A stretch of 64,000 nt of DNA from Macrostomum lignano (lineage: Eukaryota), in NCBI GenBank assembly GCA_002269645.1, contig NIVC01002283.1:110336-174335 (forward strand), in the 5' to 3' direction. The translations under genes and the position numbers were made by a program. A model generated the notes under the pieces. That model worked only from the letters and a program-made list of their open reading frames with translations. It searched no databases and was not told where the DNA came from. Below are positions 113 through 62,990 of this stretch, one piece after another (positions within the stretch are counted from its first letter, which is position 1; each line of letters opens with the position of its first letter).

Positions 113-9696
<9,584 letters not shown>

Positions 9697-11619
9697 ACTA
9701 GCCGCGATTTTTACTACTGACTGGGGACTAGCAGCAGTAGTGTGATGCAAATGTTTTTAACGCTTTAATTGCTACTTATCTATTGCCTAAAGGCTCGTAG
9801 TAGTCCGATGCGGACTTTCTCGATATTTTGTTTTCTATTTATCCAGCTCTTGACTAGTTCCGTTGAAAACGTTACCGTGACAAAGAGTCACTGCAAACAG
9901 CTCCGGTGGAGTTGCAGAATCTTAAAAGAGTCACTAAAATGTCATCCAGGAGTCGTGTTGGCTCTTTACTTTCTACTGACTCAATCAAGTAAACTAATAG
10001 AGTTGTTATAAATGTGAAATGCGATTCTGATTCATAGTGACGCAGGTGCGCTTTAGACGCAACTCATTGATTCTACAGCGACTCTGGCAGGCCTCAGATG
10101 CGACTCAACGGCCCCGGAGTCGACAGTAAAAACCCACAAATTGACTCTTTTGGTGACTAGTATTGTGATGACATCTGGTCGTTTTAGAGTCGTCTAGAGT
10201 GACTTCTTTGCTATTTTACCTGACTCTGCAACCACTGGGCGCTTTTTGGCCTAGATAACGTTTTTATCGGGAATAGTCTGTTGCGAACATTATCTGACGC
10301 TTTGATTACTACTTATCCTGAGCTTAACTAGTAGCCTGACGCGAAAATGCTTTATTTTTGGCTATTTGACTGTAATTGCTTATTTTACTATTACCTAAGA
10401 AGAATTATTGTAAAAAAATATGGCTCCAAAATTAACAATTGGCTGGTTTTACGCGTTTTCAAAAGAACATTGGTCAGGATCAAAGCTCGTAAATCTTAAA
10501 AACCATTGATTAGAATCTTCTAAACAACTAATTTATAAATTCAGCTATGCAAAAATTAAGCAGACAAGCGATAAGTAGTATAGCTGGAGTTTTCCTGTCT
10601 AATATTTACTCCAAGCCACACAGATTCTAAAATAACTAGATGGGCCACTCAGGCATATATACTTAGTAAACCAGGTTTCTACTATCAGTTAAAGTAAAGT
10701 AAATGAGCTATTTTTTTAATAAAGGCAGCTGAATTGACTTTGATAAGTTTAGAAGCCCAAGCTCGCAGGCGTAAACAACTTTGCTAATTGGTTCAGCAAT
10801 AATGTACATTGGCCAGTCCACTGAAATGTACATGGCAGCTTTAGGCTGGAATTCCGAGAAAGGCAATAAAAATTTGGGCGGGGTGGAGGGGTAGAGTGGA
10901 AAGGCGCTGTTGGAGGGTTTAAGCTGGGGGGCCAATGAATGAGCCTTATCTTTAAAAATACGTTAAAATGCTTCTGTTTAACTTACTACTGAACTGAAAG
11001 TAGTTTACACGCAAATGTGCTGAGTGGCCTATCTAGTTATTCTAGTATCTGTGCTCCAAGCTCTATTTTTATGAAGTTTTTTGTTTCTCTATTATAATAT
11101 TAAATTCTACTTTCATATCATTCTAATTACAAGTATAAGTCTGGCTTTTTTATTACTATATTACTTATTTATTTCGTTTATGATTTTTTATTTTACAATC
11201 TCCTGTTACGGCTTGTCAATCATCTTTAATATCGATTGATTGATTTGTTTATTTTTTGTTTAACTATTTGTCTGTACTTTAAACTGCACTTTTAAAGTGA
11301 CCAGCTTCTTATTTTTGCAGTAAATTTTCTGTAATCTGTGAACGGGTCAATTTTGATCTACAATTCTATTCTGCGCCCCGAATAATCTCCCTACCCCAAT
11401 TTCATTATGGAGAGTTCAAAGTTCCGGTGTGTTGTTTGACGAGTTCCAAAGACTAATCTTCCACCTGTTGCGAAATATGAAATAAATTTAACCAAACACT
11501 TTTAAACCCTTGTTGCTTTTCCCACATTCTGTAATACGTTTTGTAAATGTTTTGTTTTTTGCAAACTTCACTGGCTTTTGTTTTTTCTTGTGTTTTTTAT
11601 CTCTGTTTGAATCAGGGCC

Positions 11620-13385
11620 TTAACTCTCCCCCACTCATCTGACCCCACTCCCCCACTCCCCTGTCCGCACTCTCCCCCACTCCCCTGTCCCCACTCTCCC
11701 ACACTCCCCTGTCCCCACTCTCCCACACTCCCCTGTCCCCACTCTCCCACACTCCCCTGTCCCCACTCTACCACACTCCCCTGTCCCCACTCTCCCACAC
11801 TCCCCTGTCCCCACTCTCCCACACTCCCCTGTCCGCACTCTCCCCCACTCCCCTGTCCCCACTCTCCCACACTCCCCTGTCCCCACTCTCCCACACTCCC
11901 CTGTCCCCACTCTCCCACACTCCCCTGTCCCCACTCCCACACTCCCCTGTCCCCACTCTCCCACACTCCACTGTCCGCACTCTCCCCCACTCCCCTGTCC
12001 CCACTCTCCCACACTCCCCTGTCCCCACTCTCCCACACTCCCCTGTCCCCACTCTCCCACACTCCCCTGTCCCCACTCCCACACTCCCCTGTCCCCACTC
12101 TCCCACACTCCACTGTCCCCACTCTCACACACTCCCCTGTCCCCACTCTCCCACACTCCCCTGTCCCCACTCTCCCACACTCCCCTGTCCCCACTCTCCC
12201 ACACTCCCCTGTCCCTACTCTCCCACACTCCCCTGTCCCCACTCTACCACACTCCCCTGTCCGCACTCTCCCACACTCCCCTGTCCCCACTCTCCCACAC
12301 TCCCCTGTCCCCACTCTCCCACACTCCCCTGTCCCCACTCCCACACTCCCCTGTCCCCACTCTCCCACACTCCACTGTCCCCACTCTCCCACACTCCCCT
12401 GTCCCCACTCTCCCACACTCCACTGTCCCCACTCTCCCACACTCCACTGTCCCCACTCTCCCACACTCCCCTGGCCCCACTCTCCCACACTCCCGTGTCC
12501 CCACTCTCCCACACTCCCCTGTCCCCACTCTCCCACACTCCCCTGTCCCCACTCCCACACTCCCCTGTCCCCACTCTCCCACACTCCCCTGTCCCCACTC
12601 TCCCACACTCCACTGTCCCCACTCTCCCACACTCCCCTGGCCCCACTCTCCCACACTCCCGTGTCCCCACTCTCCCACACTCCCCTGTCCCTACTCTCCC
12701 ACACTCCCCTGTCCCCACTCTCCCACACTCCCCTGTCCCCACTCTCCCACACTCCCCTGTTCCTACTCTCCCACACTCCCCTGTCCCCACTCTCCCACAC
12801 TCCCCTGTCCCCACTCTCCCACACTCCCCTGTCCCTACTCTCCCACACTCCCCTGTCCCCACTCTCCCACACTCCCCTGTCCCTACTCTCCCACACTCCC
12901 CTGTCCCCACTCTCCCACACTCCACTGTCCCCACTCTCCCACACTCCCCTGGCCCCACTCTCCCACACTCCCGTGTCCCCACTCTCCCACACTCCCCTGT
13001 CCCCACTCTCCCACACTCCCCTGTCCCTACTCTCCCACACTCCCCTGTCCCCACTCTCCCACACTCCCCTGTCCCCACTTTTCCACACTCCCCTGTCCCC
13101 ACTCTCCCACACTCCCCTGTCCCTACTCTCCCACACTCCCCTGTCCCCACTCTCCCACACTCCACTGTCCCCACTCTCCCACACTCCCCTGGCCCCACTC
13201 TCCCACACTCCCGTGTCCCCACTCTCCCACACTCCCCTGTCCCCACTCTCCCACACTCCCCTGTCCCTACTCTCCCACACTCCCCTGTCCCCACTCTCTC
13301 ACACTCCCCTGTCCCCACTCTCCCACACTCCCGTGTCCCCACTCTCCCACACTCCCCTGTCCCTACTCTCCCACAGTCCCCTGTC
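11620..13385. repeat. 24-bp C-rich minisatellite (ctcccacactcccctgtccccact), G-quadruplex-prone on the minus strand
   Basis: About 1.8 kb array; translates as a VWESGDRG 8-aa period. Confidence 0.97.
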
Positions 13386-13724
13386 AAACAAACGGATTGA
13401 AAATAGACAAAGAAAAGGCACCATCAGAACGAGTGTCTAGTAATGTGAACTACGCACGTATTTAGAGTTTGGGTTTGGGTTTCGTCGTTCTTAACCTTAT
13501 GGTTGGAATGTTTCGAAATGCTGCGCGCATTATATGTCAATTAGTTTACCTTAGTCTGTACTAATGCATCAAGGAAGGAATGTATAAACAAACTCTGATG
13601 TTCGAACTTTGGCATCATATAGGTAAATCACAAATGTTTATATTATACTAGCCATACAATGTGTCTGGTGTTTGTACAAGCACATGAATAAACTCGCAGA
13701 GGCATTGTCACGAGTTGTCAGCTC

Positions 13725-14682: not shown

Positions 14683-16939
14683 ATGGAGGACGCCAAAGTT
14701 CAAGCGATGCGCGCCCACCAGCTGCACCAGCTGAAGAAGGAGGCCATTGTCTATTATCAATCCAACGGTGTCCCGTTGAAAATGGAGGACGCGCTCAACC
14801 AGATGTTCCGCGACCGGCCCGACTGCGTGTTCGGCTACCTGTCTAATTACTTTGCGCAGCTCGCCCTGCCGCCGGTGCTGAGCGGTGTCCGCTGTCACAA
14901 GAGCTTCGACGCTCGCGGCTGGGAGACCCTGGCCGCCGAGGTGACCTGCCGGCACCGGAACGAAGACCGAGTCGCCGGTAGAAGTCGTGCCTCGCTCCAG
15001 GTGACCGTCGGCGAGCACGACAAGCCGGAGGAGCGCGAAAGGGAAGCTCAGGAGCTTCGCCACCACGTGGAGGCCGCGCTGACTCTGGTGAACGAAGGCC
15101 CGTTGAAGCAGTTCGCCGAGCAGGGATTCGATCCGAGAGATCAGCGCGTCATCGACGAGTTCCTGCTGATGCAGCTGCAGGCCGAGGAGGACCGCGTCAA
15201 GGCGGAGCTGCAGCGCGAGCTGGATGAAGCCGGCGCGGCCTCCGGAGCGGAGGGTTCGGGCGCTGACGAGAATGCGTCGCCGCAGCATCAGCCGGCGGCT
15301 GCGGCTGGCGGCAAAGCCGGTGGCAGCGCGAAGAAACGCGGAGGCGGCAAAGGGGGCAAAGAGGTTCGGATGGGATGCCGGTTTGGGGATATTTTTCGCT
15401 GGGACATTTTCAGCTGTGTATTCTGAAGAGCAGCGGTAGGGTAGCTGCAGGTAGCGGAAGCTCTCAGTGGTAGTGTAGGGTAGCGGAAGCTTGAGTAGGT
15501 AGAGTAGGTAGCGAAAGCTTTGAGTAGGTAGAGTAGGTAGCGGAAGCTTTGAGTAAGTAGGATAGGTAGCGGAAGCTTGAGTAGGCAGGGTAGGTGGCGA
15601 AAGCCCTCAGTAGGTAAAGTAGGAAGCGGAAGTCCAACCTACATGTAAACTCGATCGTCATCCCATACTCGTACGCTCGTACCAGATAGTCACCGTGCCT
15701 GACGAGCCCCGCGAAGGCCTCTTCCCGGGCTGCCTGGCGCTCAGTTGCCTCTCCGCAGCCTGCGCCGCCGCTGGCGCCAGCGCTGCCGGAGTGCCGCTCT
15801 ACCGGCACCTTCGCCAGCAGCTGCTTGCTGACGAATCCGACAAAGACTGCGCGGACAAAGACTGGCGCCTGCCGCTGCCGATGCTGACCATCCTGAGCGG
15901 CGGCAAGGCCAGCCCCGGCAAGAGCAACTGCGTCAAGGAGTACATGATCGTGCCCAGACCGGGACTGCCCTTCGACCGGGTGCTTCGCGACTCGGTCGCC
16001 GTCTACCAGCAGGTGGCCAAGACGCTGAGCGTCAAAGGCGGCCCGGCGGCTCGGTTCACCAACGATGCTGGCGCGTTGAACACCGTCATTGACCGGCCGG
16101 AAGCCGGGTTCGACCTCATCAATGACGCGCTGAAGGCGCTGGAACTGACGGACTCGTTCGATCTGGCAGCGAACATCGCCGGGCACGAGCTGTTCGACTA
16201 CGAGAAGGGAAAATATGACCTGGCTCAGGGCGCGCAGAAGTCGCCGGACGAGACTGCCGACTTTCTGGACGACCTCAGCGCTAAGCAGGCCTCGCTGGTG
16301 GCGCTGATCGATCCGTTGAGACGCGTCGAGCGCGACGCCTGGCTCCGGCTGTGCCAGAAGGCCTCGCAACGGTGTCTCATCGTTGGTGACGCGACTCAGC
16401 ATCGGCCGGGAAGGCTGCTAGCTGAGCTGCAGCAGATGGAGGCGGAGGAGGCTGAGACTGAGCAGCCGCCGGCTGAGGAAGGCACTCAGCAGCAGCAGCA
16501 GCAGCAGCAGCCGCTTCTGACCTCTGCCTGGGTCGCTCGGCTGCAGCAGAGGAACACCGTCACGGAGCTGTTCGACTGCGCCAAGCGGATGCGCAGCTCC
16601 GGCCAGGTTGTCGTGGTCGCCGTCGGACCGAGCGACAATGGCGACACGACAATTGTCGACCTGGCGGCTGCCATGGGCGCCAGGTACCTGAAGCTGGGCG
16701 CGCCGGTTCGAGCCGAGCGCATCGACAAGCTGCAGCGGCTGGCGGAGATCGGCGAGGAGCTGCGGGCTGCTGACCTGCTGAGCCAGTGGGAGCAGCTCAG
16801 CCCGCCTCTGGTCCGGCCGCGCGGCTCCGAGACGCCCGAAGGTGAGCAGCAGCCGCCGCAGCAGCAGCAGCCAGCCTCCGAGCATCAACCTTCGACTACC
16901 AAGAGTCGCAAGGGCTCATCGACTGCGTCCAAAGCTTAA
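14683..16939 (+). CDS. ENO4: Enolase 4 (flagellar/ciliary enolase-like protein)
   Basis: Exons 14683-15363 and 15686-16939 with a phase-0 GT-AG intron. N-terminal YYQSNGVPLKMEDALNQMF...VFGYLSNYF, then DARGWETL, LPLPMLTILSGGK and IKLGAP-like LKLGAPVRAERIDK, the divergent enolase pattern of ENO4. Confidence 0.88.
15435..15635. repeat. Degenerate tandem repeat (gtaggtagcggaagcttgagta) in the ENO4 intron
   Basis: About 6 imperfect units visible. Confidence 0.8.
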
Positions 16940-18769: not shown

Positions 18770-21683
18770 ATGGATTCCACTAGTAAACTGTTGCTGCTAA
18801 GCTTAGCGCTAGCCTCCACTCTGACAATCTTCAATCCGGGATGCTCGGCTCAAGGTCAAAAAGCCGACGCGCCGCTCTATCCCGTGCTGTGCGACCCGGC
18901 ACGCGAGGGCTGCATCAAGTCTCCGTTGAATTGTCGCAGCGTCTATCGCGGCGTCGGCTCTTCAACTATCGACGAGCAGCAGTGCAATTACGTGGCCGCT
19001 TGGCGCTACGTCGGCGGCGACCTCGAGGTAGAAATCAGCGGCCAAATTGGACTGAACGGCGGCTTCGTTGCTCTCGGACTCTCGCCCGATAAGAAGGCCA
19101 GCAGCGGCCTGGCTTTGGCCTGCTTCAAATCCTCCAAGAGTTCCAACGTTGCGGTTCAGCTGGCCGCTTACCGATCTGGCGACCTGACTGAGCTTCTCGC
19201 GCTGCCCAGCGTCCTGACCGAGGCGGACAGCGTGCCGCACTTTGAGCCTGATCAACCGCAGGTGGGCGGCTTCTACTACGCCCTGCCCAAGCTGGGCTAC
19301 TCAGTTATCGAGTGCCGGGCTCGGCTGCGACTGTCGGCGTCGTCTGATGCCCGGTTGAACTTTCTGAAACGGCCGAGGGATCCTTCGGTTTGTTTATTTG
19401 TTTTGTTTTTTGTGACAGTCAATGGTATTTGCCGGTCAATTTTGTCCACATTTTCCTGCTAAATGTGTTGTTCTTTGGTCCTTATTTCCCTGTTTCTGTT
19501 TTCATATTTTTGTCCCTATCCCTGCTACCTGGTAACGGTCCCTGTTGCCTGTCCTCTCCCCTATTCTCCGTCCCTGCTGCCTGTTCTGTCACATGTTCTC
19601 TATCCCTGCTCCCTGTTCCCCGTCCCTGATGCCTGTCCTGTCACATGTTCTCTATCCCTGCTCCCTGTTCCCCGTCCCTGATGCCTGTCCTGTCACATGT
19701 TCTCTATCCCTGCTCCCTGTTCCCCGTCCCTGTCTCCTGTCCTGTCACATGTTCTCTATCCCTGCTCCCTGTTCCCCGTCCCTGTCTCCTGTCCTGTCAC
19801 ATGTTCCCTATCCCTGCTCCCTGTTCCCTTGTCCCAGTTTCAATTGCTTGTCTCCTGTTTGTTATCCTGCTCACTTGCTCCCTGAACCTTGTCTCTGTTT
19901 TATCTACCTGTTTTTTTGTTCCCTGTCTTTATTCGATTACTATAAAAGCCACCTCTAATCGTGCTCAAGGTGTACATGACGGCATCGCTGGGCACGGAGC
20001 CGCCTTCCCCCTCTGGCGAGGGTCTGGACAAGCCGACGTGGACCTACACCACCCCGGCCAGGAAGCTTTCGGTCGTTGGCGTCCGAGCCAGTCAGCCAAG
20101 AAGCGGATTGGCCAAAGCGCACGGCTGTTTCATGATCCTGGCCTGGGTCCTGTGCGCCTCTATCGGCACTTTGATAGCCAGGTACTTGGCGTGCGACTGA
20201 CAGTAGAGCTTCATTGTTTTAAGTAGTGTTTTGCATTATTATGCCTCAGCAGTGGAAGGTCCTATGTCCTTGACCCAAGCCCTACATCCTTGACCCAAGT
20301 CCTACATCCTTGACCCAAGTCCTATAACCTTGACCCAAGTCCTACATCCTTGACCCAAGTCCTACATCCTTGACCCAAGTCCTACATCCTTGACCCAAGT
20401 CCTACATCCTTGACCCAAGTCCTACATCCTTGACCCAAGTCCTACATCCTTGACCTAAGTCTTACACCCTTGATCCAAGTCCTACATCCTTGACCCAAGT
20501 CCTACATCCTTGACCCAAGTCTTACACCCTTGATCCAAGTCCTACATCCTTGACCCAAGTCCTAAATCCTTGACCAAAGTCCTACATCCTTGATCCAAGT
20601 CCTAAATCCTTGACCCAAGTCCTAAATCCTTGACCCAAGTCCTACATCCTGGATCCCTAGACCCAATGCCTACTTCATTAATTTTAAGTCCTACGTTTTC
20701 GATGCAAGTCATAAGCTTTTGTGCAAGTCATAAGCTTTTGATCCAAGAACTACGTCCTTGACCTAAGTCCTACGTCCTTGATACATGTCCTACCTCCTTG
20801 ATACAATTCCTACGTCCTTGATACAATTCCTACGTCCTTGATACATGTCCTACATCCTTGATACAAGTCCTACGTCCTTGATCCCGATGGTTTTTTAATG
20901 CTATAAATAAAACTGCCAATATAAGTGCCCGATTTACAAACTTTTTCAATTGGTTTTATTATCTATTGATTAAAACTGTCCTAATGTTGAATTCCCCCTC
21001 CAACCCGAACCCGCAGGTACTACAAGCTGCAGTGGCCTGGCCGGCTGCTCGGTCGCGAGGCCTTCTGGTTCCAGCTTCACCGCATTCTCATGGGCTTCAC
21101 CTGCTGCCTGACGCTGCTCAGCTTCATTTTAATCTTCATCGATCTGCGCGGCTACAGCGGATTAGACAGTTTCCCTGAGCTGCTGCATCCGATCCTCGGC
21201 ATCATTGTCACGATTCTGACCTTCATGAACCCGCTGATCGCTCTGTGCCGCTGCGACCCGAGCCACGAGAACCGGCCCTGCTTCAACTGGATCCACTGGC
21301 TAGTGGGCACCATCGCCTACGTGCTCGCCGTGCTGAATCTCTTCCTTGGCCTCCGACTCGAACGTGCTGGCGATCTCAGCAGCATCAATTATCACATCTG
21401 GCTGCTCATCTTCTTTGTGCTCTTCCAGTTTATTGTCGAAATCATACTGGAAATCCACACCCTGTACCATTGGAAGCGAAACAAGAAGTTGTGGCAGGCC
21501 TACAGACTCGAGCTGGAAGAGTACAATGCCGCTAAGACCAACCCGGTGTCGCTGCAGCCTCGGTCTCGACCGCTCGAGCCGCTGCCACGAGGGCGATGCC
21601 TTAGGGTGTTCCTGATGTCGCTGCATGGTGTTGTAGCCGCAGCCGTGGCCTGCATCCTCTGCATTGTGGTGCTGGCCTACTGA
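18770..21683 (+). CDS. DOMON plus cytochrome b561 ferric-chelate reductase (FRRS1/SDR2-like, no reeler domain)
   Basis: Exons 18770-19387, 19970-20181 and 21017-21683 with consistent phases. Signal peptide, CIKSPLNC motif and DOMON, then b561 with four His (AKAHG, FQLHR, LLHPILG, NWIHW). Confidence 0.88.
19570..19830. repeat. 52-bp tandem repeat in FRRS1-like intron 1
   Basis: tgtcacatgttctctatccctgctccctgttccccgtccc... repeated about 5 times at 52-bp spacing. Confidence 0.9.
20268..20880. repeat. 20-bp minisatellite (ccttgacccaagtcctacat), degenerate at the 3' end
   Basis: Period 20 visible over 20268-20650, with diverged units continuing to 20880. Confidence 0.93.
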
Positions 21684-21719: not shown

Positions 21720-22040
21720 TGAGGAGTCTGATAGGGAACCTGAGGTGGAGTCTGACAGGTAGCCTGAGGTGGAGTCTGACAGGTAGCCTGAGGTGAAGTC
21801 TGACAGGTAGCCTGAGGTGGAGTCTGACAGGTAGCCTGAGGTGGAGTCTGACAGGTAGCCTGAGGTGGAGTCTGACAGGTAGCCTGAGGTGGAGTCTGAC
21901 AGGTAGCCTGAGGTGGAGTCTGACAGGTAGCCTGAGGTGGAGTCTGACAGGGAACCTGAGGTGGAGTCTGACAGGGAACCTGAGGTGGAGTCTGACAGGT
22001 AGCCTGAGGTGGAGTATGACAGGAAGCTTGAGGTGGGGTC
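21720..22040. repeat. 24-bp minisatellite (cctgaggtggagtctgacaggtag) just after the FRRS1-like stop codon
   Basis: About 13 units. Confidence 0.95.
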
Positions 22041-22774
22041 TGAAAGTTTGCTTAATCTATTGTAAAAATGAAATTCATTAAAATACCTAGCTAATTAATT
22101 AATTACCTTTTCCGACCATTTACAAGCAAACTACAAGTTAAAATGTTTTAAATTTTCATTGCAACGGAACCAAAAATGTATTAAAGTACATCTGGAATAT
22201 TTTTAACAAAATCACTGTAAATTGACAGGCTTCTGGTTTCTAAAAATGGACTTTACAAGCGTACTTTTCGTTTTTAATTAATGAAATTATTTTATCGAAA
22301 AATTTTCATATCAAACTTATTTTCTAATCGAAAGGACAAAAACTTTTTTAGATACTGCGTTGAATTGCTTCAACTAATTGTTTTTTTGTATTTGCTTTTT
22401 TGCTTTTATTTAGAATGTTTTCGCTTCTCGAATGCCTTACGGAAAGCTTTGCTATGTTAGCAGTTTTATACATGATATTTATTTCTTTTATATATCGAAC
22501 TGTACTGATTCGGGCTTGAGTAGCCATTGAGAACCAACTGGAATGAGAACAGCGATAGAATTTTGGTACTCATTATCCAGTCCAGTTTTAAACTGTGCTT
22601 CTATGCGCTAAAACAAAATATATAAACACTTGAACACTTAAGGCAAATATTATTTCGCTCCGTTAAAAAAATACATTGGACGATGTTTAAGCTTCTCTCT
22701 AAGAGAATCACATCCAGTTACACCAGAGAGTCTCAACCTACAAGCGTAGATTCCAAACGGAGATTCTCATATTA

Positions 22775-24065
22775 GATTTCCACCTGAGAGTCTGATCTAA
22801 GATTTCCACCTGAGAGTCTGATCTAAGATTTCCACCTGAGAGTCTGATCTAAGATTTCCACCTGAGAGTCTCATCTTAGATTCCCACCTGAGAGTCTGAT
22901 CTAAGATTTCCACCTGAGAGTCTCATCTAAGATTTCCACCTGAGAGTCTCATCTTAGATTCCCACCTGAGAGTCTCATCTAAGATTTCCACCTGAGAGTC
23001 TGATCTAAGATTTCCACCTGAGAGTCTCATCTTAGATTCCCAATTGAGAGTCTCATCTTAGATTCCCACCTGAGAGTCTCATCTTAGATTCCCACCTGAG
23101 AGTCTCATCTTAGATTCCCAACTGAGAGTCTCATCTTAGATTCCCACCTGAGAGTCTCATCTTAGATTCCCACCTGAGAGTCTCATCTTAGATTCCCACC
23201 TGAGAGTCTCATCTTAGATTCCCAACTGAGAGTCTCATCTTAGATTCCCACCTGAGAGTCTCATCTAAGATTTCCACCTGAGAGTCTGATCTAAGATTTC
23301 CACCTGAGAGTCTCATCTTAGATTCCCAATTGAGAGTCTCATCTTAGATTCCCACCTGAGAGTCTCATCTTAGATTCCCACCTGAGAGTCTCATCTTAGA
23401 TTCCCAACTGAGAGTCTCATCTTAGATTCCCACCTGAGAGTCTCATCTTAGATTTCCACCTGAGAGTCTCATCTTAGATTCCCACCTGAGAGTCTGATCT
23501 AAGATTTCCACCTGAGAGTCTCATCTAAGATTTCCACCTGAGAGTCTCATCTTAGATTCCCACCTGAGAGTCTCATCTAAGATTTCCACCTGAGAGTCTG
23601 ATCTAAGATTTCCACCTGAGAGTCTCATCTTAGATTCCCAATTGAGAGTCTCATCTTAGATTCCCACCTGAGAGTCTCATCTTAGATTCCCACCTGAGAG
23701 TCTCATCTTAGATTCCCAACTGAGAGTCTCATCTTAGATTCCCACCTGAGAGTCTCATCTTAGATTCCCACCTGAGAGTCTCATCTTAGATTCCCACCTG
23801 AGAGTCTCATCTTAGATTCCCAACTGAGAGTCTCATCTTAGATTCCAACCTGAGAGTCTCATCTTAGATTCCCAACTGAGAGTCTCATCTTAGATTCCCA
23901 ACTGAGAGTCTCATCTTAGATTCCCACCTGAGAGTCTCATCTTAGATTCTTAACTGAGAGTCTCATCTTAGATTCCCACCTGAGAGTCTCATCTTAGATT
24001 CCCAATTGAGAGTCTCATCTTAGATTCCCACCTGAGAGTCTCATCTTAGATTCCCAACTGAGAGT
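22775..24065. repeat. 26-bp minisatellite (gagagtctcatcttagattcccacct)
   Basis: About 49 units; variant units recur at multiples of 26. Confidence 0.97.
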
Positions 24066-24281
24066 TTTATTTCAAAGCCCTACAATTAGCAGCTGAGAAT
24101 CTCATCTATTAAATCTATTATTTCTCCTATCCAAGTCTCACGAAAGAGTACCAGTTAGTATTATAAAGTCATTCCTGAGTAATAAGGATAGTTTACATCA
24201 TAAGATCTGGCTCGTGTTATACTAGAAATGATACTTATAGGCAATATGGAAAGCGCAGCAATATTTCTTTTCAAATCGAAT

Positions 24282-27203
24282 TCACAACTCCTGTTTGTCC
24301 TTTGATGCCTCAGGCTTTTGATCATGGGAAAAGTTTTGCTTAAACAGCGCCTTCGATTTTCGAGCCAACTCTTGCAATCGGAAGGGTCGCAAATGGTTTG
24401 TGAGTTCAACAAACTTCTCTGTGTCCGTTTGAATCTCCAAAACGCTGACCTGTAAAAAATGATATAGGTTGTTTAGAGGTTTTTTTCATTATTTAAGCTT
24501 AGGAAACTCAGCTGTGACCATTTTTGGGTTGTTGATGCTCTCCTCTGATCATTCTGTGGGCTGCTGTTACTCTAATCTGATCATTCTTTGGGCTACTGCT
24601 ACTCTAATCTGATCATTCTGTGGGCTGCTGCTACTCTAATCTGATCATTCTGTGGGCTGCTGCTACTCTAATCTGAGCATTCTGTGGGCTGCTGCTACTC
24701 TAATCTGAGCATTCTGTGGGCTGCTGCTACTCTAATCTGATCATTCTGTGGGCTGCTGTTACTCTAATCTGATCATTCTGTGGGCTGCTGCTACTCTAAT
24801 CTGATCATTCTGTGGGCTGCTGTTACTCTAATCTGATCATTCTGTGGGCTGCTGCTACTCTAATCTGATCATTCTGTGGGCTGCTGCTACTCTAATCTGA
24901 GCATTCTGTGGGCTGCTGCTACTCTAATCTGAGCATTCTGTGGGCTGCTGCTACTCTAATCTGAGCATTCTGTGGGCTGCTGCTACTCTAATCTGATCAT
25001 TCTGTGGGCTGCTGCTACTCTAATCTGAGCATTCTGTGGGCTGCTGCTACTCTAATCTGAGCATTCTGTGGGCTGCTGCTACTCTAATCTGAGCATTCTG
25101 TGGGCTGCTGCTACTCTAATCTGAGCATTCTGTGGGCTGCTGCTACTCTAATCTGAGCATTCTGTGGGCTGCTGCTACTCTAATCTGAGCATTCTGTGGG
25201 CTGCTGCTACTCTAATCTGAGCATTCTGTGGGCTGCTGCTACTCTAATTTGAGCATTCTGTGCTACCCGCCTTAAATTGAACAATTCACCAAAACATTTT
25301 CACCTGTAATTTGTTGTGCTTTTCCATGGAGAACGTGATCCAAAGATCGGGCTTCTTCGTTGGTGTTATCTCTGTCACAACTCTTTCAATAAAGAAGTGC
25401 TTCTCTTTTCCGTCCAGAACGTACTCTTCATAGACGTCGACAGCGAACTTAGTAACCTCCCTGTCAGTGCTTTGCACGAAAGCGGCTCTCGAATTCGTGC
25501 TCACAACCGGCTCCCCCTGTTCAAGCATCGCCACAAATCCGCTGTTAGAAGTCCAGTAGCCGAAGGTGCCAGGGCAGAGTGTCACCACAGCAGGTGCGCT
25601 GTCTCCAGACATGAGGTAACTGGCCTGTACAGCAGCCCCCATCACTGCCCACAAGCCAGCATCCGTGTCTAAGCTGCTGACTTCCGAATCGCTGATCAAA
25701 CTTTGGCTCAGCTCTCGAACTTCCGGGATGTTAGCAACTGATCCAAGAATCACCGCCTGACTGATTTTACCGCCCTTTATGACGGGATCATTCTGAACGG
25801 TTTTAATTAGCTTTTGCAATCTTAGAAGTTGTGCGGCAATCGCGGTCTTAAACTGAGACCGAGTTATAAGCTCGTTGAAGTCCTGGTCGTTGTAAATTGA
25901 CTCGATCTCAACCTGTGCTTCATCGCGTGAGGACAGAGTCCCAATTGCCCTCTCAACTTCTCTGCGCAGCTTCTCCATGGCGGATGCATCTTGATGAAGC
26001 ATTTTCACAAACCGTTTGCCCAATTTTTTCTCTATAGAATTCAGCAGGTGCTCGACTAGCGACTGGTGAATCTCGTCACCACCAGCCTCGGTTGAGCAGC
26101 TTTGCGCCATCATGCTCACATCACCTTTGCTTGAGAATTCAACTGCTCCAACTCCAACTGAGGCATCGCCAGCGTTAATCACCAGAATTTGCTTATTCCT
26201 TGCCCCGGTAAGAAATTGGTAGGCAACTCCTGCAGCTACAGTGGCTTCAATGACGACCACTTCGTCTGTGAAACCGGCTATTCTACCTGCGTCTCGAATA
26301 GCTCGGAGTCGCGCGTAACCAAGGCAACTCGGTACGCTGATCACGGCGCTGGTCACTTTCTCGCCCAGAGTTTCTTCAACCAGCTGGCGTTGTCTTCTCA
26401 GCAGCAGTGCCAGAATTTCAACTGGCAACAAAGACTTTTTAAAACTGTCAGATTGAAACGTCACGACTGTATCGTTGCTGTCGTTGCGCATCTCGCGGAG
26501 CACCGCGTATGGGACGCGTTGAATCTGCCGCTGCACCGGTTCGCTGTCAAAATTGACGCTGTCCAGCAGCGATAGTATCGAGTACGCGGTGCCTGTAGGG
26601 TTGGCGACTGTCTGGCATTTGGCATCGTCCCCGATCAGCATGCGACCATCGGCAGTGAAGGCGACGTAGGCGGGCGTGCGGTGGCTACCCTGGTCGTTCT
26701 TCAACAGTTCTACTGTGCCGTTGCGAATGAAGGCGGCTCTGGAATCGGTGACGAAGAGAAGAGTAGGGAACTGTAAGGAACTGCCGTTCGCTGAAGTCCG
26801 AGTACAGCACTATTGTTGTAAAGAGTTTTTTTAGGTACAGTTGCAATTTTTACATCCGGGATAGCCAAGCTCCTCAAGCACCCACACCATCATCAAAGCA
26901 TCAAACTAAGATATGAAAGTTTCGAGAGCTCGAAATCAGACAATGAGTACTTTTTTGAGCTTTAGATTCATGTGAGTAACAGATATATCGCTTGCTAAAA
27001 TTTCAATCCGTTAAAGTGATTAAAGTGTTAAACGCATTAAAATATTGAAGGTTCAAAACCTACACTTTGACTTACCTTAAATTGGACGCGTCAATGTCAA
27101 TGCCAACGAAAACTTTTTTGACAGGTTCTGCTGTCACAAAATTGCTTGGGTAGTTGAATGTCAGCAGTGTGATTATGAGAATAACTTCTCCGAGCGGTCT
27201 CAT
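24282..27203 (-). CDS. Atypical ER-targeted HSP70-family protein (BiP-like, degenerate ATPase motifs), 576 aa
   Basis: Exons 27203-27076, 26738-25304 and 24449-24282, all GT-AG with consistent phases. The spliced N-terminus GIDIDASNLRAAFIRNGTVELLKNDQG aligns without gaps to the HSP70 motif [27 protein letters not shown], followed by RTPAYVAFT and AVISVP. Hydrophobic N-terminus; the protein ends KDKQEL*. Confidence 0.85.
24545..25260. repeat. 32-bp minisatellite (ctctaatctgagcattctgtgggctgctgcta) in the HSP70-like intron
   Basis: About 22 units. Confidence 0.96.
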
Positions 27204-27497
27204 CTTTGGTATCTTTCTATGAAATGTCTAAAAGGTCCTAACAAAAGACGAAGTGTAAGTCCTGCTTTTTTATAATAGTCTCAGAAGCATAGTGCAAAAA
27301 TCTTGGTACCTAGTTAGTTTGTTCGTTCTGTCTTATTATGAACACATACCGTAGCCTGTACATCACTATACAGCTGTGTCAGTGACGCACACATTCTATG
27401 AATTGACTACAGGCTTTAGCCTCGCTACGTTGCCCTTTTGTTACCTTCTATGCAATAATCTTAAGTTAGTTGATGCAGGTATTTGTGCAGAAAGGCT

Positions 27498-27912
27498 TCT
27501 GACACAAATCGGAGGTCGGGTTCTGACACAAATCCGAGGTTGGGAATTCTGACACAAATCCGAGGTTGGGAATTCTGACACAAATCCGAGGTTGGGAATT
27601 CTGACACAAATCCGAGGTTGGGAATTCTGACACAAATCCGAGGTTGGGAATTCTGACACAAATCCGAGGTTGGGAATTCTGACACAAATCCGAGGTCGGG
27701 TTCTGACACAAATCCGAGGTCGGGTTCTGACACAAATCCAAGGTTGGGTTCTGACACAAATCCGAGGTCGGGTTCTGACACAAATCCGAGGTTGGGAATT
27801 CTGACACAAATCCGAGGTCGGGTTCTGACACAAATCCGAGGTCGGGTTCTGACACAAATCCAAGGTTGGGTTCTGACACAAATCCGAGGTCGGGTTCTGA
27901 CACAAATCCGGG
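27498..27912. repeat. 24/26-bp minisatellite (ttctgacacaaatccgaggttgggaa / ...ggtcggg)
   Basis: Two length variants interleaved, about 16 units, ~300 bp upstream of the HSP70-like ATG. Confidence 0.95.
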
Positions 27913-28320
27913 TCTCAGAGAATTCGCTAGCAGTGTTAAAATTGAATGTGGGCTGATTTTAAAGTTTATAACACGACATTATTTAGTGTTTTGTATTTAA
28001 TAAATTACTAAATAAATATTTAAGCTGTTTCAGTTACAAAAACGGCTATTTCAGCTTTTTGCGCTAAATTTTTGTAACAACATTATCGTAATTTTCATTA
28101 AAACTGACTGAAACAAAAAAAATGAAAATATAATGTCTGTAGAAAAACTGGTGCTTAAGGTGGCGGGGGAAATTTCTAAAATGAGAAAAATTAAACACAA
28201 TAAAATAGGGATTTTTTAATGATAATTAAGCATTTCTAACAACAAATACCTCCGCCATGGACAATAGCGTAGGTATATAATATCATAGTAGTTATATCAA
28301 TTTCGGGGCAGATGCTTCTC

Positions 28321-28592
28321 AGAAGCTACTGACACCTGCCAGAAGCTACTGACACCTGCCAGAAGCTACTGACACCTGCCAGAAGCTACTGACACCTGCC
28401 AGAAGCTACTGACACCTGCCAGAAGCTACTGACACCTGCCAGAAGCTACTGACACCTGCCAGAAGCTACTGACATCTGACAGAAGCTACTGACACCTGCC
28501 AGAAGCTACTGACACCTGCCAGAAGCTACTGACACCTGCCAGAAGCTACTGACACCTGCCAGAAGCTACTGACACCTGACAGAAGCTACTGA
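28321..28592. repeat. 20-bp minisatellite (agaagctactgacacctgcc)
   Basis: About 13 near-perfect units. Confidence 0.96.
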
Positions 28593-28874
28593 CAGGAGAG
28601 ACAGACGCTATTAGCAACTGACAACAGGAACTACTGGCTACTACAGCTGGCTAAATTTACAATTGACAAAAAGTATTAAATTATTTACAACTGACAGAAG
28701 CTGAACTAGATTATAGAACGTACCCCAAGTGACAACTGACAGAATTTTTAGCTCAAAAAAACGCCTTCATCACTGCCCTAAAGAGTAACAAGAATTAGTA
28801 AAGATGACATAGAAATCTTCTAATCCGTAGTCTCAATGGTCCATGACAAATTGTCCATGACAAATTCAAGCAGT

Positions 28875-31800
28875 TCACAGCTGGCACACTGCCAGCATTG
28901 GCTGAGTCTCCTGCCGAACGTCCTGCCCAGCCAGGTGAGTCATGTGGACGCTGCTGCTGCCTTGGCAGTGTTCGAAGCTTCCAGCCACGAAGTTGCCTTC
29001 ATCAATACCATCTCTGCCGATCGCCGGGACGCCGCGAACTCTTCCAGCAGCTGCAGCGCCAGACGGAAAAACCTGCAAGTCAACGTTCACCTCCTCACCG
29101 CGACGTCTTCTGCCGCGAAGTTCACGACCTTGCGTATCGTCAACGCCGCCTGGTCCGCGCCTGGCGCCACCGCCCAGGCCGCTAGCGCTGGCGCCGCTAT
29201 CGCCAGCGGCTCGCCAACAGCGGCAGCATCGGGACACCACCTGCAGGAAATGAGCTCGGAATCGCTTGCTGATGATACACAGGGTGATCGGGTTGCTGGC
29301 TGAGTAGGCCGACGGCAGCAGCTTGGCGATCATCTTGATCCAGACAAATGCCTCGGTTACCTGCCGATGGTGATAATTAGGTTATAGATACAAGAGTCCT
29401 AAGAAGGTACGTTCTAATAACTCGTACGTCCTATTGTATTTATCTTTGGTGACAAAATTCACCAACCTTCCCCACTCACCTGCTTGGACAGGAAGAAGTG
29501 CAGCATGGTTATGTAGTCGAGTGCCCAGGCGACAAAGAACACGGCAGCCAGGCACAGCACCAGCTTGGCCAGTTTTTTCCTACTCTCAATCTGATTGGCG
29601 GCGGAAACGTTGGCTCGCTCGGAAGCGGCCGCGGCTCGCTCGTGAGCTCGGGCAGTTTTCATCAGCTTGCCAGCCATCAGGCCGTAGAACACGGCAATCA
29701 GAGCGCCTGGGAGCAGGTAGTAGAGAGCTAGCTTGAGCAGTACCATGGTTGTGCGATAGGTTGACCCCCAGCTGGCTGGGAACGGGTAGCAGTGCTTGAT
29801 CAACAAGCAACGGTGTCGCTTCTCTTCAATGTCCGCGCTCACGGCGTAGGGTATGGCTAGGACCACTGCGATTGGTGGAAGGGTTTTGCGTCGTTGTGTA
29901 ACATTTTGTACTGATTGTGCATTCTGTAACATTTGTATCATTTTTATCATTCTGTAACCATTTGTACCATTCTGTAACCAATTGTACCATTCTGTAACCA
30001 ATTGTACCATTCTGTAACCAATTGTACCATTCTGTAACCAATTGTACCATTCTGTAACCAATTGTACCATTCTGTAACCAATTGTATCATTCTGTAACCA
30101 ATTGTACCATTCTGTAACCAATTGTATCATTCTGTAACCAATTGTACCATTCTGTAACCAATTGTATCATTCTGTAACCAATTGTACCATTCTGTAACCA
30201 ATTGTACCATTCTGTAACCAATTGTATCATTCTGTAACCAATTGTACCATTCTGTAACCAATTGTACCATTCTGTAACCAATTGTACCATTCTGTAACCA
30301 ATTGTACCATTCTGTAACCAATTGTACCATTCTGTAACCAATTGTACCATTCTGTAACTATTTGCACCGTTCTGTAACCATTTTACCATTTTATAAGCAT
30401 TTGAACTATTCTGTAACAGGTTGTACCTTTATGTAACGTTTGTACCACAGAATACAGTGCATTCTGTGGTTTGTACCTTTGTATATTACGCTTTTATCTA
30501 AAACTCTTTCTCACTATGCTGTCGCCACTCACCAGCAGCAATCCAGATGATCCCAAGGCCCAGTTTGGTAACAAAACCTGGCCTCGAAGATTTCAAATTC
30601 GACATCGGCCTGGTGATGGCAAGGCACCTGTACAGCAGTTTGGGTGAGTTTGTATTCGTTAGTTATTACTGAAGTGAGTAGTGCAACCCAAAATCATATG
30701 TACTGAAAGTGCATCACTGAGCGCTATCATAAGTTGTTGCTTACGTTCTGAAAACTAACAAAGAAAAGAAAGTTTCCAGACAGTGTCCTGCATTTCATGA
30801 TTGATTGCTTCAATATTTGCTTCTAGAAAGTGACTTCACCTCAGATCCCGCAAAGCAAACAGCAGAAGCCAAGAGGAGGAGTGTCTTGAGCAGCTGTCGT
30901 GAGAATTCGTCACTCCTCGGAGATTCGGGAAAAGTGAACTCCAAAGCTCATAATAATTTGATAGCCAAATCGGAAACAATTTTCTTCGGCAGCAGCTCTG
31001 AAGCAACAGTCGTGAGGGCGGAAATTGAAGACCCTGTGTTTTCAAGAGCAGATGCTCCTTCCACCTTGGACTGCAGAAGAAGTTAGTCAGGCGCACGAGC
31101 GCGGGATCTAGATCAGCTTTTTCCACCTGGCTGACCCTTATTTTCCGGCAGAACTAGTTTAAATAACATGCGTTGGTTTGTTTGGCTTCATCCGGTTCAC
31201 CCCGCCAGTTCGCATCACTCTATTTCACTGTTCAGCGAGGTTTCAGGGTGGGTAATTTAAACGGATATTCAATTTGACAAATTGGCTCAACGGTAATGAG
31301 CATACTGTGCGCCACAAAAGGCTTCACCAATTCAAACCTAATTATACGCCAGCTTAAGGCTGAATTCTACTTTGCAGATAAGTCTTTTTGGCATTGTTCT
31401 GTTTTATCTAATAGCTACATCTCTCTGCGTCAGGGAGACGTTGTCAGGTTATTTATTGAGTGGCTAAGATTTGACTTGGTATCTTACAATAAAATCATTT
31501 CCTTTTTTCATTACCAGTTCCCTGTCAGACTCTACAGTTGAATTGGCATGATCTGTTTCATATTTCAAAAACGTGTCAGCATTTGAATCGAAGCTCAAAC
31601 CTGTCGATCGACAGAGCAACCAGGGTGTATACGGAGACTCCCACGGTTAGAAACCGGCAGAAATAGATCGTCTTGCACAGGAAGACCGGCAGTTGGACGC
31701 CAAATTTGCTAATTATATCGCACGGAATGAACAGCATCAGGTAGACGCAGTCAGCCGCAGCTAAATTTGTTATAAACAGATTCGGCGTGGTTCTCAAACG

Positions 31801-52035: not shown

Positions 52036-53029
52036 ATCATAAGTACCGAATGTAGAAGCCGTGTCCATGAGGTGGCTATCGTGGAGCTCCCATCATTCAC
52101 CGAGGTTGTTGGCCTCATTAGAAAAGGCACACTTTTATGGAACGTGCCTATGATTTATTGGTGGATTGGAGGGATCATGGACCCCGGCCTCACTACATAC
52201 AGCGTGTACACCACTTTGTGTGAATAAGTCTGCGTTTCAGAACCAGGTAACTTTTTCCAAGAAATAAGGGACTTAGAGGAATACAACGGTGGAGGGAACA
52301 ACTTGCAATACCTTTGAAACCCATGTACCCACAGCTGACAAATCTTCGGTAAAGGTATGAAAACATTCATGGTTTTAGGTCGCAAGATTCCAAAGGATTC
52401 TACAAACTGCTTTACTTGCTGGATTATTTTTTTCTCTCAATTTTTTCTTCTCAACCACAGCTCTGCAATTATTTTATCTTGCATCATCAACTCAAATGCA
52501 ACTTTATTTAGACGTCATAAAACATTTTATAAAAACTGGATTGGTAAAAACTTTATCGCTACTACTAGTAATACATAGAGAATCCTTTTTGGAAATTATC
52601 CTTAGCTGAGGCCACTTACTTTATCAGCAGTTAATGCTTTTAAATCAAATTATGCTCTTTATACATTTCTTTTCAACCTAAATAATACAATAATGGGTTT
52701 TTATGAGCTGTCTTAGATATAACTGTTTAGTTCCTTAGATGCGTTCCATTTTTCTGTTTATTAAATATCCGAAAATCTATAATAATGCATAATCATAAAC
52801 AGCAATTTTTTTGTTTCTTTTATTACTGTGCAACCGTGATTCCAGGTTTTCTTGGAAATGGTGTTGTTTAGACTGTCATAACCGCAACCGCAATGTACAC
52901 GTGTATTATGCATGACAATATTGCTGCAATCGTAGATATTTGTCTAAGAATTTCTCTCAAACTTGAGAGCCTGGGAATCATCACTCTGCGCCATAGTGAC
53001 ACTGGCGTATTCGCTGACCTCTCATGACC

Positions 53030-57575: not shown

Positions 57576-59032
<1,457 letters not shown>

Positions 59033-60609: not shown

Positions 60610-62990
60610 TGGCATCATCACCGCCGTGAAGCACAGCGACTGGGCTGCGCGGATCGTGCCGGTCGTCAAGAAGGACGGCAGCGTTCGGATTTGCGGGGAC
60701 TACACAAGCTGACGACCTACAACGCGGTGAGCAAGCCGGAGCACTACCCGCTGCCTCGCATCGAGGACCTCTTCGCCAAGCTCGGCGGCGGCTTCAAGTG
60801 GACCAAGCTCGAACTGTCCAACACCTTGCAGCACCCGCGCTGGCCGACGACAGAAAGGCGTTTCTCACCATCAACACGTCTAAAGGCCTCTTCCAGGTCA
60901 ATCGCCTCCCATTCGGTATCACGAGCGCCAGCGCGATCTTTCAACGCACCCTGGACACCCTTCTGGGAGAATTGGACGCCGTCCAAATCTTCGTCGAAGA
61001 CAGTCTGGTCACCGGCAGCACAATGGAACAGCACAAGAGGAACCTGGCGCTGGTCCTGCGGCGCTTTAAGGACCCCGGCCTACGACTCAACAAGGAGAAA
61101 TGCAAATTCTTCGAGGACTCTGTTGAGTACCTCAGCCATCGGATCGATGCCAGCGGACTCAAGCCGCTGCCGGATCGGGTCACCGCCGTCCAGGACGCGC
61201 CAGCACCCAAGGACGTCAGCCAGCTGCACTCGTTTCTGGGCATGCTAGCGCAGTACTGCAAGTTCCTGCCCAACTTGTCTGGCGCCGCTCCACCAGCTCT
61301 TGGCCAAGAACACTCGCTGGTCATGGGGGCCACCGCAGCAACAGGCATTCGCAGAGGCCAAGCGGCTGCTGCTCGAGTCCACGGTTGTCGTGCACTACAA
61401 TCCAAATCTGCCGCTGCTGGGTCTGCTGGGCGAGCGCAAGGGCATCCCGGCACACGCGGCCGCCCGGATGCAGCGCTGAGCCATTTGGCTGTCGAGCTAC
61501 GACTACACGCTGGAGTTCAGGCCGACCGAAACGCATGCAAATTGCGACTCGCTCTCGCGACTGCCGCTTTCGCACCTGTTCGAGGAGGAGGCGGCCGTCA
61601 ACTCACTGCTGCTCGACGAGGGCTCTGGGTCGGCCATCACGGCGCTGGCGGCGGCGCGGCACACTAGGACGGACGCCTCACTCGGTCGGGTGCTTCGCTG
61701 CTTGCAAACTAGCGCGCCCATCGGCGCTAACCTGAGCAACTTCGCCTGGCGGCCAACCGGTCGACCAAGATTGTGTCCTGTGGAGCGCAAAGGTCGTCGT
61801 GCCGACCGCGCTGCGTCAACACGTGATCCAAGAGTTACATCAGGCGCATCCCGGCATCAGCAGAATGCGCGCCCTGGCTCACAGCTACGTGTGGTGGCCC
61901 GGCCTTGGCTTCGGCCTTGGCAGGACTTGGCCGGTAGCCGTGGCCAAGTCCTGCCGCAACTGTCAGCTCAACCAGCCCGACCCGCCCAAGGCACGGTGCA
62001 ACCGTGTCCTCTGCCGTCCGAGCCATGGGAGCGCCTGCACATCGACTTTGCCAGTCCGGTCGACGGTCACACGTACCTGTGGTGGTCGATGCTCATAGCA
62101 AGTGGCCGGAGGTCCAGCGGATGCGCGTTACAACGTCGGCGGCCACCATCGCGGCGCTGCAGGATATGTTCGCGCGCCAAGGCATTCCACGCACCGTGGT
62201 GTCCGACAACGGGTCGCAGTTCGCCTCCGCTGAGTTCGCCGAGCTCACCCGGGCTAACGGCATTCGTCACGTGTTCTCGGCGCCGTTTCATCCCGCCACC
62301 AACGGCCAGGCCGAGAGCTTTGTGCAAGACCTGAAGCGACATCTACTCAAGAGCGGCCACTCCGACGTTGAGCTTCAGTGACTGCTGCTCAGCTATTGCA
62401 ACTCTCCACACAGCATCAGCGGCGTTGCCCCGAGTCAGCTGCTCATCGACCGTCGGCTTCGCTGCCGCCTGGACCTCTTGGCACCGTCGCTGACCGATGA
62501 CGTTCAACGACGGCAGGAGCGACAGCTGCAGGAACGCAGACCGGCGCGCGAGTTTCAGCTGGGTGATCACGTCCTCCTCCGCGACTACAGCGCCGGCGCG
62601 ATAGCCGGTGACATGCCACGCTGGGCTGAGGGCGTCGTCACGGGCGCCGGCAGCCGCAACTACACGGTTGACTCGGAGCGTGGCCAGCACTTCCGGCACA
62701 CTGATCAGCTGGTGGCAGCCCGCGCTGACTCCGCTGACACCGTCCATCCGCCGCCTGCTACGGATGACGGCGCCGCCCCGAGTGACAGTGGCGTGCGAAG
62801 CGCTGACACCGAAACCCCCGCCGTCACGGCCAGCGAGGGGGCGTCCGGCACTGACGTCGAGCCTACGAGCGGTGTGCGACTCGAGCCTGGCACTTCTCGG
62901 CGGTAACCCTGAGGGTTCGAGGCCCACCTCAGAGACTACAGCTGTGAAGGGGGGAACTGACTCAGGGGGGGGGGGAGTGTGACATTGTGG
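60610..62990 (+). mobile_element. Decayed Ty3/Gypsy pol (RT, deleted RNase H, integrase) with PPT and probable 3' LTR start
   Basis: RT motifs [30 protein letters not shown] and RLPFGITSASAIFQR. Integrase motifs HQAHPG, HIDFA, VSDNGSQF and FHPATNGQAE, plus a GPY/F-like FQLGDHVL. Many frameshifts. Purine tract at 62964-62977 followed by TGT. Confidence 0.92.

Follow-up and report, generated by a model that had tools for sequence, protein, structure and literature searches.

The 64,000-nucleotide stretch of Macrostomum lignano DNA analysed here (assembly GCA_002269645.1, contig NIVC01002283.1, positions 110,336 to 174,335 of the forward strand; the window in what follows, with positions counted from its first letter) carries on its minus strand, at 24282-27203, a three-exon gene for a 576-residue member of the HSP70 family. 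On the evidence of its sequence this is a real protein-coding gene that arose by duplication of the BiP gene (HSPA5), with a product now only approximately 30% identical to BiP. The encoded protein (the query below) combines a signal-peptide-like N-terminus and a retrieval-type C-terminus with a heavily eroded nucleotide site and a substrate-binding domain (SBD) that has lost most of its lid. We think it rather probable that it is a protein of the endoplasmic reticulum (ER) lumen that keeps the shape of an Hsp70 but does not cycle with ATP, serving as a constitutive binder or as the fixed partner of another ER factor.

Only the middle exon of the gene is represented in the list of open reading frames (ORFs), as ORF 25286..26704 (-) of 472 aa. 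An initial annotation of the window had drawn attention to this, and had proposed that splicing yields a protein of 576 aa whose last exon ends in KQEL and whose frame and splice sites are intact. We reproduced that model in each respect: three exons with GT-AG introns join into 1731 nt in frame, at canonical splice sites and in canonical phases, and the window copy encodes a protein ending in KDKQEL. Exon 1 (27076..27203, -) supplies the first 128 nt of the coding sequence, which specify a signal-peptide-like stretch (residues 1-25; 27129-27203, -) and then the first strand, including the degenerate phosphate-1 loop GIDIDASNL (27078-27104, -); its donor is AG/GTAAGT. Intron 1 (26739..27075, -; 337 nt, GT..AG, GC content 0.38) leads through a long pyrimidine tract to the exon 2 acceptor, ...CACCGATTCCAG/AGCC. 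Exon 2 (25304..26738, -; 1435 nt, donor CAG/GTGAAA) encodes most of the nucleotide-binding domain (NBD) and the SBD beta domain, and includes the codon for Leu98 at the position of the catalytic lysine (26573-26575, -) and the degenerate phosphate-2 loop NAGDASVG (26153-26176, -). Intron 2 (24450..25303, -; 854 nt, GT..AG, GC content 0.46) is for the most part a 32-bp minisatellite (24544-25262, 22.5 copies). Exon 3 (24282..24449, -; acceptor TTTTTTACAG/GTC) completes the SBD beta domain with its final strands and adds one lid helix (residues 543-565) and the tail, with the KQEL codons at 24285-24296 and a TGA stop at 24282-24284. The GC content of the exons, 0.50, exceeds that of both introns. 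The other five frames of the spliced coding sequence contain 14 to 35 stops each, and none of 2000 shuffles of it was free of stops (mean 28.6). A stop codon lies in frame 15 nt 5' of the ATG. Further out, a TATAAA 71 nt 5' of the ATG (27269..27274, -) is a possible core promoter element, and an AATAAA 211 nt past the stop (24066..24071, -), just before a 26-bp minisatellite, a possible polyadenylation signal; both are consensus matches only.

It is important to note that intron 1 contains an alternative in-frame acceptor (26781/26780), 42 nt upstream of the one adopted here, whose use would give a protein of 590 aa with 14 additional residues at the phosphate-1 strand and first beta hairpin. 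Without these residues the match to the first Hsp70 hairpin has no gap, and because they interrupt it we rejected the 590-aa form as the principal model. With the acceptor at 26738, by contrast, the query segment GIDIDASNLRAAFIRNG aligns to BiP without a gap; because of this alignment and the pyrimidine tract preceding 26738, the 576-aa form is taken as the main product, and the longer form could still be a minor isoform. The existence of a second acceptor, and the fact that the gene model was built from sequence alone, also lend what weight there is to a more radical alternative, in which the middle ORF is real and exon 1 or exon 3 is foreign to it, the signal peptide or the KQEL then being accidental. 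Such an artefact seems to us very improbable. Exon 1 provides exactly the first strand that is missing from the middle ORF, VFVGIDIDASNL, in register with BiP, while exon 3 continues the alignment of the SBD beta domain (VSVLEIQTD against VTAEDKGTG) and adds the first lid helix, such that homology to BiP spans both splice junctions without a gap. Both introns have canonical splice sites and phases, which recur in a colinear segment of another contig (L001, described below), and the middle ORF by itself has neither an in-frame ATG near its start nor the first Hsp70 strand.

Membership of the HSP70 family is evident from the match to the Pfam HSP70 profile (PF00012; 217 bits against a cut-off of 20.6, E 4.9e-64), for which the 590-aa model was used and in which residues 54-565 match profile positions 9-509 of 599. 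Within the family, BiP is the class to which sequence comparison brings the query nearest. In a sequence search of the PDB the top 15 distinct sequences were all BiP, at 223 bits for the full length and 193-198 bits for NBD-only constructs, as against 183 bits for full-length Hsc70 and approximately 165 bits for its NBD. Group profiles that we built from canonical ER, cytosolic and bacterial sequences ranked in the same order, with 253.9 bits for ER-BiP, 219.1 for cytosolic Hsp70 and 186.2 for DnaK. The query also contains the BiP-type motif KLRREVE and, in FT-x-x-G-x-x-LIGD, the additional residue that is characteristic of BiP and missing from cytosolic Hsp70s. Profile scores, PDB ranking, motif and length signature together support BiP ancestry, in line with the BiP paralog that had been suggested at the outset. 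A neighbour-joining tree with bootstrap was uninformative as to this placement: it joined the query to a long-branch sequence (P0159) inside the ER group with support that flipped between replicates, which we judged to be long-branch attraction. Because the very long branch of the query made the tree unusable, group-profile scores, which favour BiP, and shared insertions and deletions were used in its place.

The distance from BiP is large. Identity to any BiP is approximately 30-32% (32% to mammalian BiP), and by pairwise alignment amounts to 34% over the NBD and 25% over the SBD. Animal BiPs are approximately 80% identical to one another, and the BiPs aligned here are far closer to one another than any of them is to the query. 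When 1.84 billion cluster representatives were scanned exhaustively with HMMER, all 14,980 hits stayed at or below approximately 35% identity, and that library contained no orthologue; the gene had been described as lineage-specific, and this result is in keeping with that description.

Nucleotide-site residues were mapped onto BiP (human numbering) by pairwise alignment. In the phosphate-1 loop, GIDIDAS (residues 34-40), BiP D34 is kept as D36, whereas G36, T37 and T38 are replaced by D38, A39 and S40. In the phosphate-2 loop, NAGDAS (231-236), D224, G227, G228 and T229 have become N231, D234, A235 and S236, and just beyond it D231 has become G238. The catalytic lysine of the FDAKRLIGR motif, K96 of BiP and K71 of Hsc70, is L98. 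E201 persists as E207 within IEATVAAG (206-213). The adenosine contacts K296 and R297 correspond to I308 and G309, and G364, S365 and R367 to S376, V377 and N379. In the catalytic set Hsc70 D10, K71, E175 and D199, only the equivalents of D10 and E175 are thus kept (D36 and E207), K71 being Leu and D199 Asn. Across a large multiple alignment 15 of the 19 nucleotide-site positions are changed, the highest count among the 218 homologues sampled, the next highest being 9; aligning E207 with E201, as the pairwise and HMMER alignments do, lowers the count to 14, a one-residue insertion after IEAT moving it by one column in the large multiple alignments. The three motif assignments made in the initial annotation (GIDIDAS for phosphate-1, NAGDAS for phosphate-2, and the surviving glutamate of EATVAA) were all correct, and the degeneration that it reported goes further than it had claimed, the replacement of the catalytic lysine having been overlooked.

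Several of these replacements have counterparts among engineered mutants. Among mutants of hamster BiP, G227D has a significantly lower affinity for nucleotide, T37G is blocked in the conformational change that ATP drives, T229G is blocked in hydrolysis, and R197H no longer interacts with the J-domain (PMC2171714). The query natively has Asp at the position of G227, Ala at that of T37, and Val (V203) at that of R197, the arginine of the J-domain contact. We infer that useful ATP binding and hydrolysis have probably been lost, and with them regulation by ER J-proteins. The opposing view, that of a working ATPase chaperone with a non-canonical nucleotide site, could appeal to the retention of D36 and E207, to an NBD whose fold is predicted confidently and which is better conserved than the SBD, and to the example of Ssz1, which is degenerate and nevertheless binds ATP. 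It would have to accommodate not only the loss of the catalytic lysine but also two Gly-to-Asp changes in the phosphate loops, one of them the equivalent of BiP G227D, the change of D224 to Asn, and the replacement of every one of the adenosine contacts K296, R297, G364, S365 and R367; we accord it very little likelihood.

As a whole, the predicted structure is an HSP70 fold with a truncated end, consisting of the NBD, an SBD beta sandwich and one lid helix. The AlphaFold2 model has a mean predicted local distance difference test score (pLDDT) of 79.4 and a predicted template modelling score of 0.81; pLDDT exceeds 90 in the NBD, eight SBD strands are modelled at approximately 50-75, and the single helix 543-565 is followed by a disordered tail. 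The best Foldseek match to this predicted model was ATP-state BiP (6asy), with a template modelling score of 0.83. AlphaFold often favours the docked state for Hsp70s, and for that reason we do not interpret the conformation of the model. The SBD beta domain, at residues ~430-536, is weakly conserved, and approximately 85 C-terminal lid residues of BiP have no counterpart in the query (576 aa as against ~654 aa). An SBD beta region that is only partly recognisable and a lid that is largely missing had both been predicted, and correspond to what we find: 25% identity to BiP and one remaining helix. At the pocket position of BiP V461 the query has Phe474, the alignment here lying in a low-confidence region; V461F, a commonly used substrate-binding-deficient BiP mutant, is represented by crystal entry 6hab among both the PDB sequence matches and the Foldseek matches.

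The query is not alone in M. lignano. The search of cluster representatives also recovered UniProt A0A1I8HSR8 (P0146), 586 aa long in a public model without the N-terminus, which ends in KAEL and is 29% identical to the query. The two proteins share a 4-residue insertion after KKxGK and a 1-residue insertion in the RLIGR segment, along with a series of derived replacements (AQxCST for ATNGDT, KAI for KAK, GF for GL, LGY for LGIE and LW for IEV), all of them absent from canonical BiP, cytosolic Hsp70 and DnaK; in all, 16 identical derived residues are common to them at otherwise conserved columns. Like the query, A0A1I8HSR8 has a degenerate phosphate-2 loop (VIDVGARS), no catalytic lysine and a K-x-E-L ending, but unlike the query it has kept a full-length helical lid and more BiP-like residues. 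By solved-structure match it is nearest to BiP (270.7 bits, as against 188.7 for HSPA1A), and because BiP leads by 80 bits its automatic name, 'Heat shock 70 kDa protein 14' (HSPA14), is unsupported. Judging by their shared insertions and replacements, the query and A0A1I8HSR8 belong to one BiP-derived family that is small and old; when a profile of their alignment was searched, only canonical BiP and DnaK were returned, and no further members. Other partly eroded ER-type HSP70 paralogues do exist, namely a Logan transcript (P0131) that ends in REEL and has the phosphate-2 loop INMGAST, and proteins of Lecanicillium (P0134) and Podila (P0246) that both end in HDEL. In none of these are more than 8 of the 19 site positions changed, compared to 15 in the query, and they have longer lids and no specific kinship to it; from them it is apparent that erosion of the ATP site has occurred again and again in duplicates of BiP.

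Residence in the ER is suggested by both ends of the protein. The first exon had been described as signal-peptide-like, and inspection together with a hydropathy calculation is in line with this: a short charged start is followed by the hydrophobic core VILIITLLT (residues 7-15, mean Kyte-Doolittle hydropathy 3.08) and then, by inspection, by a putative cleavage site of small residues, VTA/EP. The C-terminal KQEL fits the PROSITE ER pattern [KRHQSA]-[DENQ]-E-L. In a systematic screen of AKxEL reporters, any residue but proline was functional at position -3 (PMC2140024), a tolerance that covers both KQEL and the KAEL of the sister protein; literature searches for a described KQEL retrieval signal returned nothing specific. 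An N-terminus of this kind would also suit a secreted or post-ER Hsp70-like protein, such as a gland, adhesive or reproductive product, in which KQEL is weak or inactive, and some motifs that match the PROSITE pattern do localise poorly to the ER (PMC2140024). The extreme divergence of the query and the lack of orthologues among the sequences searched would be typical of fast-evolving secreted proteins, and could reflect an extracellular role. We nevertheless consider secretion quite unlikely, given that KQEL does fit the retrieval pattern at a position where K-x-E-L accepts any residue but proline, and that preservation of the motif class across paralogues that are only 29% identical argues for its use.

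The initial annotation had also held that the gene is still under selection, a claim that stands over the long term and finds less support in the recent past. In a simulation of neutral decay, 4 of 500 sequences were still free of stops at 80% identity and 0 of 500 at 65% identity or below; at approximately 30% identity to BiP the query is far below this limit of stop-free neutral outcomes, and long-term selection on the gene is supported. For the short term we compared the window with L001, a segment of contig NIVC01000679.1 in the same assembly that is colinear with window 3353-27658 at 91-99% identity and therefore contains the locus a second time, as an allele or as part of a duplicated segment. 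Every splice site is kept in L001, and exons 2 and 3 are intact there. The coding exons of the two copies have diverged by 0.58%, as compared to 1.79% in adjacent unique non-coding DNA (Fisher p = 0.004), and differ by 10 substitutions, of which 4 are synonymous and 6 non-synonymous. Evidence for short-term selection between the copies is weak.

A number of observations weigh against a functional, non-cycling ER protein. The ratio of non-synonymous to synonymous differences per site between window and L001 is 0.45, a value that does not differ significantly from 1 with 10 differences only (binomial P = 0.18). The annotation of GCA_002269645.1 has no gene call at this position (record of contig NIVC01000679.1), and neither the exact 576-aa nor the exact 590-aa sequence is present in a collection of ~15 billion public proteins; it is on these two grounds that we call the gene unannotated in public data. 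Exon 1 of L001 (L001 21638-21766, corresponding to window 27076-27203) contains one extra G (GGAGAAGGTT as against GGAGAAGTT) and is thereby frameshifted in the signal-peptide region. Because the two exons of the nearby ENO4 gene show no coding indels between window and L001, the extra G may be a real lesion and not an assembly error, and the L001 copy would, if so, be defective. An ERSE-like element (ER stress response element, CCAAT-N9-CCACG) was not found near the gene, the sole match in the window being distant, at 52143, and below chance expectation. The confidence of the structural model is low for the SBD beta part, and the retained D36 and E207 make some binding of nucleotide or metal possible.

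Several of these points would be expected if the gene were a decaying or never-expressed duplicate, a relic that was functional for a long time and is now silent, its intact frame representing the state just before decay. It would account for the lack of an annotated gene in the transcript-guided public assembly and for the absence of the protein from collections in which some Macrostomum transcript assemblies are represented; a frameshift in L001, where coding indels are otherwise absent between the copies, and a substitution ratio not significantly below 1 would fit as well, as would the fact that catalytic, J-binding and pocket residues have all been lost. We regard this as unlikely. The window copy retains 576 open codons over three exons, and neither of the two short exons at its ends has lost its targeting signal, the predicted signal peptide in one case and the retrieval motif in the other. 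Drift over the long term is excluded by the neutral simulation, and the exons are approximately threefold less diverged than the non-coding DNA adjacent to them. Duplicated genome segments have been reported in M. lignano, and in such a genome the loss of one copy need not mean the loss of the gene.

Our preferred reading remains that of an ER-lumenal protein which does not cycle with ATP, and its mechanism may be sketched as follows. The protein would enter the ER, be cleaved after VTA25, and be returned by the KDEL receptor. Within the ER it would be a non-cycling, Hsp70-shaped protein that neither binds nor hydrolyses ATP, that would not be switched by ER J-proteins, because the equivalent of BiP R197 is Val, and that would have no lid with which to clamp clients. 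Its likely role would be either that of a constitutive, low-affinity binder (a holdase) or that of a fixed structural or regulatory partner of some other ER factor, resembling by analogy the role of the degenerate Hsp70s Ssz1 and HSPA14 in the cytosolic ribosome-associated complex. Provided that the gene is expressed, its product probably works in this way, with the shape of a chaperone and no ATP cycle. It is tempting to go further and to speculate that Macrostomum, and perhaps macrostomorphs more widely, possess an ER-lumenal counterpart of the Ssz1/HSPA14 pseudo-Hsp70s, in which the query and A0A1I8HSR8 act independently of nucleotide as fixed subunits or regulators of ER folding or stress sensing; members of such a family might, for example, sit in place of BiP on a J-protein, on an exchange factor or on a sensor of the unfolded protein response without cycling themselves. 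This broader proposal is a doubtful one, and we offer it as conjecture.

The segment shared by window and L001 carries several other genes. A giant gene, with a product of 5368 aa and an RZ-type zinc finger in the public annotation, is represented by its 3' part at window ~3353-9540 (+), as placed from L001 1-6191, and runs off the locus. A C-rich block at window 11568-13440 (GC content 0.60, GC skew -0.65) is filled on both strands with long overlapping low-complexity ORFs, which have only weak, repeat-type Pfam matches below the cut-offs (Fibrinogen_BP, Cornifin); a Tctex-1 gene is annotated just downstream of this block in L001 (9043-9480, -). ENO4 (enolase 4) follows in two exons at window 14683-15366 and 15683-16936 (+), ORF 15695-16939 being 99% identical to M. 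lignano enolase 4 (BOX15_Mlig012301g3), a protein carried on NIVC01000679.1. Between ENO4 and the HSP70-like gene lies a cytochrome b561-like gene (window 18770-21683, +, equivalent to L001 15484-16735; 238 aa in the public annotation), and this stretch is the most diverged between the copies, with 91-95% identity and many indels. A dense series of minisatellites is found on both sides of the HSP70-like gene and in its intron 2, at 20259-20881, 21723-22043, 22747-24065, 24544-25262, 27497-27910, 28320-28594 and 29948-30437, with units of 20-32 bp in 13 to 51 copies each that match at 83-98%; copy numbers in the window and in L001 are not equal.

In the rest of the window, ORF 29459-30130 (-) has a weak match to rhodopsin-type seven-transmembrane receptors (E 6.6e-9). 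Its N-terminal third is a translated 20-bp minisatellite (repeated MVQLVTEWYNWLQNGTIGYR), for which reason the start of the ORF is probably artefactual and the actual gene for the receptor would have a different model. A 416-aa ORF at 57782-59032 (+) encodes most of an alpha-tubulin ending in EEEGEEY, the first 20-30 residues of which must sit in an upstream exon. At 60798-61667 (+) a reverse-transcriptase ORF (RVT_1, E 3.8e-17) is probably the remnant of a retroelement.

The HSP70 family and pseudo-Hsp70s are already known, and our searches also recovered partly eroded BiP duplicates from fungi and from a transcript assembly; new here are the extent of the erosion, the fact that it goes together with ER signals that have been kept and a lid that has been shortened, and the presence of two such family members in a flatworm that is experimentally tractable. 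Limited literature searches for a previously described ER pseudo-Hsp70 found none, and those for work on this gene among studies of M. lignano HSP70 returned nothing specific. If the query and its sister are expressed and resident in the ER, they would constitute a natural experiment in which mutations that have been made by hand in BiP (G227D, T37, T229, R197 and V461F-like) are combined in one evolved protein, and it could reveal which interactions of BiP persist without nucleotide cycling. M. lignano is amenable to transgenesis and RNA interference, and the role of the gene is therefore testable. On a practical level, the gene is absent from public annotation and its sister A0A1I8HSR8 carries a misleading automatic name.

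As to known systems, the query had been described as neither BiP proper, nor GRP170, nor HSPA13, and its architecture agrees: the SBD beta domain is present, long Hsp110-type insertions are not, and the lid is shortened. BiP (GRP78, HSPA5; Kar2 in yeast) is its best match by sequence, profile and predicted fold, and shares with it a signal peptide (predicted in the query), a K-x-E-L type C-terminus, KLRREVE and the order NBD, linker, SBD beta; the query differs from BiP in its low identity, in the 15 replaced site residues and the lost J-domain arginine, in its one-helix lid and in its length. GRP170 (HYOU1, Lhs1), of the ER Hsp110 class, is likewise an ER-lumenal member of the Hsp70 superfamily and has a role in nucleotide exchange, but at ~900-1000 aa, with long SBD insertions, the extended helical C-terminal region of its class (total length above 800 aa) and the ability to bind ATP, it contrasts with a 576-aa query that has no large insertions relative to BiP; all top matches of the query in the PDB sequence search and in Foldseek were Hsp70-class proteins. 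HSPA13 (STCH) is an Hsp70-family protein with an N-terminal signal sequence and is associated with microsomes; by its description it consists of an NBD only, with an intact ATPase core, and is thereby set apart from the query with its SBD beta domain and degenerate core. The closest working analogue may be the pair Ssz1 (yeast) and HSPA14 (animals), cytosolic degenerate Hsp70s that bind the J-protein Zuotin/MPP11 at the ribosome as subunits of the ribosome-associated complex, where the Hsp70 fold is reused as a fixed structural subunit. With the query they have in common a degenerate ATPase site, a truncated SBD without a functional lid and a presumed role as non-cycling partner. They are, however, cytosolic proteins without signal peptide or retrieval motif, and Ssz1 structures rank only 46-50 among the Foldseek matches (~E 1e-32, compared to 1e-41 for BiP), behind BiP, DnaK, Hsc70, Ssb and mortalin, whereas the query descends from BiP and not from their lineage.

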